DNA of 62,611 nt, the filler included, from Choristocarpus tenellus KU-1152 (taxonomy: Eukaryota > Protista > Phaeophyceae): NCBI GenBank assembly GCA_964200185.2. It is 13 parts of 13 records of this genome, joined end to end, with 100 filler letters (N's around TTAATTAATTAA, not from the genome) between each part and the next. Parts side by side here need not be neighbours in the genome. Positions count along the whole stretch, not along the records: positions 50,457 to 53,795 come from CAXNAD020020707.1; 12 more parts are not named here. One strand, given 5' to 3'. The notes beneath the pieces are model-generated. The model worked only from the letters and a program-made list of their open reading frames with translations. It was not told the origin of the DNA and made no database searches. Shown here piece by piece: positions 49,888-53,897 of this stretch. A program made the translations under genes and the position numbers. The first letter of the stretch is position 1. Each line of letters opens with the position of its first letter.

Positions 49888-51646
49888 GTGAGACAGGAGA
49901 GGACTGAGTAATACAGTTGCAGCAGTAGTAATAGTGCTAATGTAAGGTGCAGTGATAGTAAGACCAGTTCGATGACGGTATATTAGGGTTCAACAGGGTT
50001 AAGAGGAGAGGTTGCAAGGCTTGATGCGTCATAGATAAGCACAAAGTGTGTGTATTTTGTGTTGGTTGTTTTCTATTTTATTAATTTGTGCCATTCCCCT
50101 CCCCCGTTCATCGAAGAAGCAGTTGCTACCATTGCTAGTTTGAATTTTGGCATGACTCGAGTATTGGGGGGGGTGGGGGGAGGTGGGAGGTAAGACACCA
50201 TGAAGGTCTTTTCTCATTCATTTGTCATCATCTCTTGAGATAGTGTCCATTGCTGCCTGACTGAAGAGGGGGGAGGAGGGGGGGGGGGGGTTCTAGCAAG
50301 GGAAGGCAGTGTCCATCCCCTAATTTCCAATTTCAATTTCAATTTCTATGCATTTGNNNNNNNNNNNNNNNNNNNNNNNNNNNNNNNNNNNNNNNNNNNN
50401 TTAATTAATTAANNNNNNNNNNNNNNNNNNNNNNNNNNNNNNNNNNNNNNNNNNNNCCCCCATGCGCCTCTGGCCTCCCCCTCCAGGGTCCAAGTTGGCA
50501 GCCTCGACATGATTGTTCTTCACAAGCTGTTTCAACTCTTGCTCATTGTTGCGGTGGAGTGTAGCATGGTTCCCCAGGAAGAAATTTCCGAGAGTATTCC
50601 AGGAAAGAAAAATTCAGAGGCGGTTTCCAGTTAGATTCAGGAGAGGACACAAGGGAGCGGAGGAAGCACAGCAGTTTCTCAGTACATAAAAAAGAGTGTC
50701 AATAATCTGTGCACATAACTCTTGCATATAGATCACACAGATCACAAAATACGATGCAAATGAAACTCCCATCCTTCCTTGGGGGTGGGGGTGTTACAAG
50801 TATTTATGCGTATTAATGATCACATTAATTATCACCTAGGTATCGAGAATAACCAGGGGTCATTAACTGACACCAGGCAAGGTAGCCCCTCAACAAGGCT
50901 CCAAACCTTTCTGTCTCCGATGAGTCTGCCATCCCCTCTAGGACCTTTTATCAAAACATACACAAAGGGGAGGGAGAAAAGGAGTTGTGTGTGTGGGGGG
51001 TGGGGTGGGGAGTTGTAAGACAGAATTTCTGGCTGTGAACAAGGAAATCAATAGCATATTGAGCCTACAGATTACAATAAAAAAATACCCCACCACACCA
51101 CTTCTCAAACAGCACAACACACACAACACAGCCAACACTACTACTACTCCACTTTTCGTGTTGATCACGATGAAGTGTAATCCAATAGTTTAGTTTAACT
51201 CCTTTTTCATGCTGACAGTGAAACCTCATGATCAAGATGAACAGAGCAACACCATTTCATTGAACAGACAGGGCCCTAACCCTAACCCTAACTATTTCCA
51301 CCTACCGGAAGAAACGAAAAGTCCCCTCTAATGCTTCCTACCGCCATACAATAGCCATGGACAAGTAATTCAACAAATACCAACAGCATACTAAATAATC
51401 AATTAATCAATCAATAAATCAATCATACCGTACCATACTGTATTGATGACTAAACTGCAAAACCACTATCCAACACTCCTCCTCTCCTACACTGTAATAG
51501 AAACAACAGACTCAACCAACCTCACTACACTACACTACACTACACAAACACCCAGACCTAACCCACCCCTCCCCCCTCGAACCAACAACCCAAAAACCAT
51601 ATACCATCAACAGTACAGCAACACAAACAGTTTAACCATCTATTAA

Positions 51647-51760
51647 CCTCAAGGGCAGAGTCCAGTCCTGTCCACAGTGAAGTGAAGTCACGCGACCCTA
51701 ATCTCTCCAGAATGACTGCAACGGGGTTCTCCGAAGGACCGGGGGGGTTCTCAAGGGTCC
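51647..51760 (-). CDS. Probable internal exon of an unidentified minus-strand gene (further candidate exons near 50870-50937 and 50457-50590)
   Basis: CCAG acceptor … TLENPPGPSENPVAVILERLGSRDFTSLWTGLDSALE|GT donor. GC-richer than its flanks. No recognisable domain. Confidence 0.45.
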
Positions 51761-52097
51761 TGGAAGGCGAGGTGTGGTGCAAAAGGAGTGTGGAGGTTAC
51801 ATGTAGAACATCATGGTATCACATTATTGAAGACTAACAGAAGATACACCCTAACCCTAACCCTCACTCCGTCTAACAAAAATAAAATAATAAAAAAATC
51901 TGGAGAACAAAAATATTAAAAAAAAGAAGACTCTCTTCGACTCCTACGGTGACTCTTCAATACTGGGAGCAGGGGGACCAGCCCTAACCCTGTGAATAAA
52001 AAATAATATTAATACACTAAATGAGTTTGTACTTGAGAATAGTAGCAAACACCCCCCCCCCCTCCTAAAAAGAAAGATGAGTAAATCAACAATGCCC

Positions 52098-52144
<47 letters not shown>

Positions 52145-52311
52145 GTGTCAGTGTGACAGAATGAGGTAAGCCTTCGATGGTACAAGCTAAACCTATCACA
52201 ATGTCGCNNNNNNNNNNAATATTAATACATAAAATGTGTTTGTTCTTGAAAATAGTAGCAAACCCCCCCCCCCCCCTCCTAAAAAAAAAGATGAGTAAAT
52301 CAACAATGCCC

Positions 52312-52344
<33 letters not shown>

Positions 52345-52649
52345 GTGTCAGTTTGACAGAATGAGGTAAGCCTTCGATGGTACAAGCTAAACCTATCACA
52401 ATGTCGCCTGCTTCCCATCCCATCCAATCAACCAACTGCAATCAACGCATCTAGAAACCAAGTCGCCTCATTACTAATTACCCTCACCTAATCAACACAA
52501 CCATCACAGTACTCAATACCCTAACCCTCAAAAGTCTCTTACCATAACAAAACCCCAACACAACTAGGATATTGCACCACAAAGAAAAAGTATTTCATGA
52601 GTGTATGTATGTATGTATATATATGTTATACATAAAATGAATAAAATAC

Positions 52650-53719
52650 GTGTGCTCAGCGTGTTAACTGTGTCTGCATCGCTGACAAATCTCTCAGCCT
52701 ACAGAGCGTATATCAAAAAGGGATCTCCACTACATAAATATATAGGAATCACCCCTTTTGCATCCTGGCACTGTACTCTATACACCATAATCTATATACA
52801 TTTTCTTATTAAAAAAACAAAAGAGATAAAACTATCAAAATCCAGTATACACTAACGACATTAAAAACAAGTACAAAAATCAAGAAAATTCGATCTGAAG
52901 AGCAGTATAGAGTCACTAGAACAGATTAATAAAAAATTATCACAGAGAAAGTGGGTATAACAGCCAGTAAGTGTGCTCAGCGTAGAGATAGTGTCTGCAT
53001 CGCTGAAATAAATGTTCTGCCTGCAGAGCGTATATTATAAAGGATTACCGCCTGTATCACATACAAGGAAACCCTCATCGCATCCTAGCACACTCCGTCC
53101 AACATCACTTTCACTTGAAAAAAAAAGATTCAACTGACTTGAATAAATAAATAAACACAGGAACATATATATAGATAAATAAATACATTTATTATTATTT
53201 TGACTTCCTACCCACCCAAGTCACAAGAAAACCACGATAAGTGTGCTCAGCGTAGAGATAGTGTCTGCATCGCTGAAATAAATGTTCCGCCTGCAGAGCG
53301 TATATTAAGAAAAGATCGCCTTCCATATAGAAAGGAAACCTTTCATCGCATCCCTGCACACACCACACCACATCACATTATTTTTTTTGCTTTTTAGACA
53401 ACTGGACACGTAATACTTTAATTTTTTTATTTTATCACCTCACCGGTTCTTTAAATATTTTTTGATGTTTTATTATTCTATTTTTCAGAGGGTATTATTA
53501 CACAATCAATAACAAAACACTCTAACAGTACAAAAAAGTCCCAAGAATGGATCAATTAAAGACCATCGCAAGAGGGTGGGTATAACAGCCAGTAAGTGTG
53601 CTCAGCGTAGAGATAGTGTCTGCATCGCTGAAATAAATGTTCCGCCTGCAGAGCGTATATTATAAAGGATTACCGCCTGTATCACATACAAGGAAACCCT
53701 CATCGCATCCTAGCACACT
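52650..53719 (-). ncRNA. Tandem cluster of four ~125-nt box C/D-like structured RNAs (52650-52772, 52970-53094, 53240-53361, 53595-53719)
   Basis: Minus strand reads (A)GTGTGC…GCACAC(T) terminal stem, RGGATGC box-C-like motif, terminal CTGA box D, two internal hairpins and a conserved TAATATACGCT antisense to 18S rRNA AGCGUAUAUUA. No reading frame stays open across copies. Confidence 0.65.
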
Positions 53720-53897
53720 CTCTACATAAAAACAGTCACCACCTTATGCCTCTCGCCTCCCCCCCCCCCCCCAAAAAAAAAAAAAAACAAACCAANNNNN
53801 NNNNNNNNNNNNNNNNNNNNNNNNNNNNNNNNNNNNNNNTTAATTAATTAANNNNNNNNNNNNNNNNNNNNNNNNNNNNNNNNNNNNNNNNNNNNTC

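Follow-up and report, generated by a model that had tools for sequence, protein, structure and literature searches.

A putative cluster of box C/D snoRNA genes with compensated box motifs and a displaced 18S rRNA antisense element in Choristocarpus tenellus

Which class of RNA, if any, is encoded by four short, related units on the minus strand of one piece of the Choristocarpus tenellus KU-1152 genome (assembly GCA_964200185.2), and what would such an RNA act on? The window, the whole stretch of DNA that was analysed, comprises 62,611 nucleotides including filler, and its positions 50457-53795 come from record CAXNAD020020707.1. This piece is AT-rich and eukaryotic-looking, with microsatellites, TTAGGG-type hexamers and no long ORF. 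The initial annotation had proposed that the units are kink-turn RNAs of an unusual, multi-branched design. Based on their motifs and predicted folds, we conclude that the array is very probably a cluster of paralogous genes for box C/D snoRNAs that have the complete C-D'-C'-D layout.

Four units with a terminal kink-turn

The piece carries four low-copy units of 120-123 nt on the minus strand, with start-to-start distances of 321, 270 and 355 bp. The units and their terminal boxes are as follows.

Copy c4: 53596-53718, minus strand; 123 nt from terminal stem to terminal stem, a box C/D snoRNA-like gene
Copy c3: 53241-53361, minus strand; 121 nt, with the 3' 70 nt of c4 and a hairpin A that differs from that of c4
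Copy c2: 52971-53093, minus strand; 123 nt, one base apart from c4, at position 2 of the D' box
Copy c1: 52652-52771, minus strand; 120 nt, the most divergent copy and the only one with a perfect CUGA D' box
Box C: c4 53705-53711 (AGGAUGC), c3 53348-53354, c2 53080-53086, c1 52760-52766, minus strand; L3 is G, not U, and the last base is C, not A
Box D: c4 53602-53605, c3 53247-53250, c2 52977-52980, c1 52656-52659, minus strand; CUGA, with the preceding G pairing with the last C of box C

Read from 5' to 3', each unit consists of the 5' stem, box C (RGGAUGC), a hairpin A of 42-46 nt, an invariant linker, G-CNGA, a loop of 10-11 nt, A-GCGAUGC, a 16-nt spacer ending in G, CUGA and the 3' stem. 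A geometric scan for a stem, a 3-nt bulge, GAUG/CUGA and a second stem returned exactly copies c1 to c4, all on the minus strand, with 0.06 matches expected by chance per dinucleotide shuffle of the piece, and so recovered the four units with a terminal kink-turn that the initial annotation had described. In all four copies the terminal motif forms the pairs GA, AG, UU, GC and CG after the 3-nt bulge, which is the geometry of the standard box C/D kink-turn (PMC5689011). Box D is CUGA near the 3' end in every copy. Box C, rightly called non-consensus before, fits five of the seven positions of RUGAUGA and retains the GA core and the U-U and G-C pairs; its last base, C, is compensated by the G ahead of CUGA (C-G at 5b-5n). 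Compensated non-consensus C/D boxes of a related kind occur in nucleomorph snoRNAs (PMC6461891). An alternative box C, GCGAUGA, was rejected, since it is absent from copy c1 and the stem geometry fits RGGAUGC instead. A covariance model built from the four copies detected no fifth copy within piece 50457-53795, and a tRNA/tmRNA scan of the piece was likewise negative.

The copies are related to each other in a patchwork manner. Over their 3' 70 nt (52968-53037, 53238-53307 and 53593-53662), c2, c3 and c4 show no more than one base difference, and a block of 169 nt that includes flanks is 93% identical between c2 and c4. The spacers between units, only 150-230 nt in length, had been described as unrelated, which holds for the flanks of c1 and c3, where no alignment is found, but not for c2 and c4. 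Despite its matching 3' 70 nt, c3 has a hairpin A that is only about 50% identical to that of c2 and c4; this combination of a 3' part equal to c4 and a different hairpin suggests gene conversion or recombination inside the array.

The sequence is present in only three public runs, all of one study, none of which is on record as RNA. Contigs from the runs cover parts of the array at >=99%; their depth is 51 where 70 nt are common to several copies and 22-24 in unique sequence. The listing of contig pieces, which had been filtered, contains no further unit look-alike at 80% likeness, and the other, weaker matches in it lie in AT-rich spacer, off the units. With the depth of the shared stretch about twice that of unique sequence and no paralogous pieces listed, the data fit a single low-copy locus rather than a transposon end. 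No terminal inverted repeats were found around the units; the subterminal repeat of a high-copy transposon, against which the initial annotation had cautioned, has left no sign in these filtered data and was rejected.

Several further features of the piece were observed. A near-duplicate of about 200 bp (52005-52207 and 52218-52407) flanks a gap of 10 Ns and is probably a scaffolding overlap artefact. Short interstitial runs of TTAGGG-type telomeric hexamers lie on the minus strand at 51271-51293, 51846-51868, 51973-51991 and near 52520, among other simple repeats. On the minus strand of 50458-50772, two in-frame open stretches of 52 aa each, separated by a single TGA, run off the edge of the piece and show leucine-rich-repeat-like motifs by eye, as in a pseudogene fragment or a gene with a recoded stop; searched separately, neither gave a Pfam or PDB match, and the 3' piece gave no Atlas match.

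The internal C'/D' motif and the variable hairpin

The internal parts of the units are the following.

D' box: c4 53641-53644 (CGGA), c3 53286-53289 (CGGA), c2 53016-53019 (CAGA), c1 52694-52697 (CUGA), minus strand; always preceded by G
C' box: c4 53622-53628, c3 53267-53273, c2 52997-53003, c1 52676-52682, minus strand; GCGAUGC, invariant
C'-to-D spacer: c4 53606-53621, minus strand; 16 nt in all copies, with the central 7 nt different in c1
Hairpin A: c4 53661-53704, c3 53306-53347, c2 53036-53079, c1 52714-52759, minus strand; structure conserved, sequence variable

The initial annotation had placed the rRNA-antisense element away from any clean D or D' box. This view has to be revised: inside the region that it had drawn as a second hairpin (hairpin B), a CNGA D' box lies 7 nt downstream of the antisense and faces a C' box. 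In all copies, D' (CUGA, CAGA or CGGA) and C' (GCGAUGC) form GA, AG, U-N, GC and CG with K-loop geometry. The internal and the terminal motif share the C-G pair at 5b-5n, and in both the last A of the C-type box is replaced by C, with a G before the D-type box, a compensated change. The sole variable base of the internal motif faces U, and the resulting U-U, U-A and U-G combinations all fit, whereas in the alternative hairpin-B fold the same base is placed opposite A in an internal loop, where only the U of c1 could pair. Column shuffles reproduce the internal D'/C' pattern with p 0.003 (0.3%), or 0.0006 when the 5b-5n pair is required, for a pattern picked after the data had been seen. GA dinucleotides are the most conserved portion of C'/D' motifs (PMC3116282), and in yeast, C'/D' motifs that have diverged, as well as D' boxes read in alternative registers, are functional (PMC3116282, PMC5389607). 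Other elements were found as first described, namely the invariant linker, the terminal stem and the change of copy c1 in hairpin B, which keeps a U-G pair on the minus strand only. According to RNAfold, the D'-proximal bases can moreover pair with bases after C' to give a 6-bp stem. Around C', 16 bases are invariant, more than the box needs, and these have no rRNA partner.

The second potential guide, upstream of box D, is of a different kind. Its C'-to-D spacer has no conserved rRNA target in a panel of eukaryotic rDNA, and as a shared guide it was rejected for the lack of a conserved rRNA partner and of a pairable base at -5 common to c1 and c2-c4. The earlier remark that this segment varies is borne out by the spacer core, in which c1 agrees with the other copies at one of seven bases. 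This guide next to box D is probably inactive; inactive guides beside intact boxes are common (PMC3116282).

Hairpin A had been reported to remain paired despite sequence divergence, and it indeed folds in every copy, with z-scores of -2.4 to -4.2 on the minus strand versus -1.1 to -2.7 on the plus strand, while divergent copies are identical in 17-23 of 44-46 columns. Four pairs of its consensus fold are changed on both sides; since the sample comprises three distinct hairpin sequences, this covariation is suggestive and falls short of a formal covariation test. Matches of its 5' strand to 18S and 28S rRNA were rejected as guides, as they are located in the stem and missing from c1. The conservation pattern between c1 and the other copies is uneven: identity is 18/20 in the segment from guide to D', 16/16 in the C' block and 13/13 in the D block, against 3/9 in the loop and 1/7 in the spacer core. 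Overall, boxes and guide are 90-100% identical, and hairpin A, K-loop and spacer core 14-50%. Flanks upstream of the units are not conserved. Hairpin A is, in the best explanation, probably a structural insert.

Together, the units have the structural features of box C/D snoRNAs (a terminal-stem kink-turn, box D and an internal C'/D' motif) and, within the 10-21 nt expected of a methylation guide, an rRNA antisense with 11-14 bp to 18S nt 594-607 of other eukaryotes. The design is thus less novel than the multi-branched one first envisaged, as it corresponds to the standard C-D'-C'-D layout plus one inserted hairpin, with precedents among known snoRNAs (PMC3116282, PMC6461891). Extra secondary structure and divergent boxes are found in yeast C/D snoRNAs (PMC3116282), and linked multi-copy snoRNA genes are known in protists (PMC2784804). 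Within the known C/D class, two features stand out, the compensated GAUGC/G-CNGA boxes and the displaced guide. In line with the earlier suggestion of an undescribed family, Rfam searches with the whole piece and with single copies yielded no family above chance and no U54/SNORD54 match at E values up to 10; one DdR4 match (15 bits, E 4.4) was judged to be chance. In JGI metagenomes, a strict pattern gave 0 matches and a relaxed pattern 15, none of which had a box C and the terminal stem where expected; all resembled bacterial coding DNA. Assignment to U3 was rejected, as the upstream flanks are unconserved, a conserved 5' domain with boxes A'/A is missing and Rfam gives no match. Acetylation guides such as snR4, snR45 and U13 pair on either side of a bulged C of 18S (C1280, C1773) by means of two guide sequences (PMC12848939); this class was rejected for the units, in which only one conserved antisense is present, at 594-607.

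The 18S antisense element and its register

The conserved antisense involves the 12-nt linker that is invariant across the four units, and occupies the following positions.

18S-antisense, c4: 53652-53662, minus strand; 11 bp with 18S nt 594-604
18S-antisense, c3: 53297-53308, minus strand; 12 bp with 18S nt 594-605
18S-antisense, c2: 53027-53037, minus strand; 11 bp with 18S nt 594-604
18S-antisense, c1: 52705-52718, minus strand; 14 bp with 18S nt 594-607, including 2 G-U pairs

The numbering is yeast-type and the reference, L013, is a full unit (SSU-5.8S-LSU plus 5S) with an 1800-nt 18S. The 18S panel was assembled from eukaryotic rDNA contaminants in GTDB bacterial assemblies, of which 92 loci were fetched and 70 retained. 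Two groups of loci that might be human were omitted: 13 came from human- or vertebrate-associated records (L003, L006, L010, L016, L027, L030, L039, L045, L050, L051, L068, L077, L080), and another 9 showed high GC or a signature of vertebrate type (L008, L019, L023, L041, L055, L061, L071, L082, L086). As an observation in its own right, at least 92 stretches in GTDB bacterial assemblies bear eukaryotic 18S rDNA, which amounts to contamination.

Against this panel, the pairing between linker and 18S is the sole duplex of >=10 bp common to all four copies and most of the rDNA loci; no second conserved antisense element was found between the four copies and the panel. The A-to-G change of copy c1 is preserved as a G-U wobble with 18S. 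An equally long conserved rRNA duplex arises in 1.8% of column shuffles (p ~0.018), a modest value that refers to the 18S of other eukaryotes. The methylated bases of Arabidopsis 18S in this region, G599 (the U54 site), U604, U615 and A623 (PMC8053127), correspond to G595, U600, U611 and A619 of L013. Since the offset is constant at 4, the linker target can be placed in the U54 region, and the complementarity to the U54 target that had been claimed before is supported, against the 18S of other eukaryotes, over 11-14 bp at nt 594-607. In the 18S of L013, the target strand pairs with nt ~20-32; we take it to be the 3' strand of helix 3, the helix by which the 18S 5' domain is closed. A literature search aimed at the guide sequence and at 18S variants that match it returned nothing relevant. 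A candidate pairing with the ACAGAGA box of U6 would span 7 bp, in c1 only.

The position of the guide relative to D' is the least canonical property of the units. The canonical D' box (CNGA) follows the end of the antisense at a distance of 7 nt. Counted from this box, position +5 faces A591 and is mismatched with all 18S variants that were displayed from the 70 retained loci. Reading CUGY as D' would place +5 at U598; CUGY, however, is without a 3' A and pairs poorly with C'. When YAGG, 4 nt upstream of CNGA, is taken as D', +5 falls on G595, the U54 site. YAGG is also the register in which RNAfold pairs this region with C' in a 6-bp stem, but it lacks the 1n adenine and ends in G. In snR48, modification depended on a single essential base of D', its 3' A, and the shifts of register described in that work span 1-2 nt, not 4 (PMC5389607). 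With a natural 18S variant that carries G at 593 (L091), the duplex is extended to 13-16 bp, leaving only the -1 base unpaired in the YAGG register.

Candidate functions and the closest known systems

As the best explanation, to which we would give slightly less than an even chance, the array is a C/D snoRNA cluster that directs methylation in the 18S 594-604/607 segment as a lineage-specific U54-type guide, with G595 as the best candidate site. The array would then be transcribed, probably as a cluster given its short 150-230-nt spacers or else from introns, and the transcript trimmed to the terminal stem. From established snoRNP biology, the terminal kink-turn would be expected to bind Snu13/15.5K and to recruit Nop58, Nop56 and fibrillarin. 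The single conserved guide would pair with the 3' strand of helix 3 in pre-18S, nt 594-604/607, and fibrillarin would 2'-O-methylate within that segment, most plausibly at G595, with the D-adjacent guide inactive and hairpin A serving as a structural insert. Such methylation would require either that D' be read in a register shifted upstream from CNGA by 4 nt, or that nt 589-593 of the host 18S be different. Counted within this explanation, yet very improbable by itself, is the textbook arrangement in which the host 18S diverges at nt 589-593, the 16-19 nt upstream of CNGA pair and 591 is methylated. The D'/C' geometry fits this arrangement and the C/U variation at -4 would be tolerable opposite G; however, no 18S variant among those displayed from the retained 70 loci shows the bases required, and C589 is the same in all of them.

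The same displacement of the antisense from the canonical D' box would also suit a C/D snoRNA that does not methylate but acts as a chaperone, like snR190 or domain A of U14, holding the 3' strand of helix 3 and timing the closure of the 18S 5' domain. Here the RNP would assemble on both motifs, and with the antisense 7 nt from D' and the intervening bases sequestered in the internal stem, no methyl group would be added. The potential 6-bp stem between D'-proximal bases and those after C' and the pairing of the target strand with 18S nt ~20-32 both speak for this possibility, and snR190 provides a precedent, since its antisense lies upstream of D', is directed against a domain root helix, is partly contained in an internal stem and guides no methylation (PMC8536666). 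On the other hand, chaperone snoRNAs are few (4 of 46 yeast C/D snoRNAs guide no methylation; PMC12848939), a second conserved antisense was not found in the units, and in plants the same 18S segment is targeted by ordinary methylation guides (PMC8053127). We consider a chaperone role unlikely, though it is the main rival to methylation guiding, and attach the same reserve to the corresponding proposal of an undescribed lineage-specific chaperone family that holds open 18S helix 3, a small-subunit counterpart of snR190, with a compensated GAUGC/G-CNGA code. In a related reading, the RNAs may be methylation guides in which the C'/D' stem is extended and the +5 register thereby shifted by four bases. 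It is improbable that the 18S match is partly due to chance and that these are orphan C/D RNAs, whose partner would be a lineage-specific RNA (spacer rRNA, snRNA or mRNA) or whose linker would bind a protein. The roughly 2% of column shuffles that reach an equal conserved duplex and the sixteen invariant bases around C' with no partner in rRNA leave room for this, but the match occupies the only single-stranded stretch upstream of D' that is invariant; in each copy it continues into columns that vary, and the 18S site it reaches is already known as a snoRNA target. It is very improbable, finally, that there is no RNA gene here, with a DNA repeat, transposon end or decayed duplication mimicking the motifs: the fact that none of the three runs holding the sequence is on record as RNA and the repeat-rich neighbourhood with its assembly gap would agree with it, whereas the selective conservation of boxes and guide, the conservation of hairpin A in structure only, the strand-specific G-U pairs, the contig depth (22-24 unique, 51 on the shared 70 nt), the absence of listed look-alikes at 80% and the lack of terminal inverted repeats all argue against it.

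If the units are U54-type guides, they show to what extent the guide for a conserved rRNA methylation can be rebuilt, with a longer RNA, a guide moved to D' and altered boxes that escape Rfam and standard snoRNA finders based on RUGAUGA, and nature would here provide an experiment on what determines the D' register. If they are chaperones, they would add to the rare non-modifying snoRNAs, with an action on the closure of the 18S 5' domain. Under either reading the RNA class is well understood, and the impact is a specialist one.

Compared with box C/D methylation guides in general, the units share the terminal stem with kink-turn, the C'/D' K-loop, the order C-D'-C'-D, a 16-nt C'-to-D spacer, one conserved 11-14-nt rRNA antisense beside one variable guide, and clustered paralogs. 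They differ in the GAUGC end of both C-type boxes, which faces G-CNGA, in having G or C instead of U at L3, in the 7-nt distance from the antisense to the canonical D' downstream and in a hairpin of ~45 nt that separates box C from the guide. In mode of action, they would come closest to U54 and, in second place, to snR190. Human U54 has a length of about 65 nt and carries its guide directly before box D. The array RNAs, in contrast, are 120-123 nt long with the guide before D' and have no Rfam similarity to U54/SNORD54, although their antisense is directed to the same 18S segment and one register predicts the same G (Arabidopsis G599, equal to G595; PMC8053127). With snR48, U18 and snR13 they have in common that more than one register is available for pairing of the D' region with C'; in those snoRNAs the shifts are 1-2 nt and the 3' A is needed, whereas the alternative in the array lies 4 nt away and ends in G (PMC5389607). 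The 3' domain of U3 snoRNA likewise contains two kink-turn motifs, but the array lacks the conserved 5' domain (boxes A'/A and hinge) upstream of the stem and has no Rfam U3 match. A G at L3, as in the terminal motif here, is also found in box C' of some U3 RNAs. Finally, snR190 resembles the units in possessing C/D and C'/D' motifs, an antisense that precedes D' and addresses a domain root helix, and a D'-proximal part in an internal stem, and differs in acting on helix H73 of 25S, in having a second antisense of 15 nt (PMC8536666) and in showing no sequence similarity.
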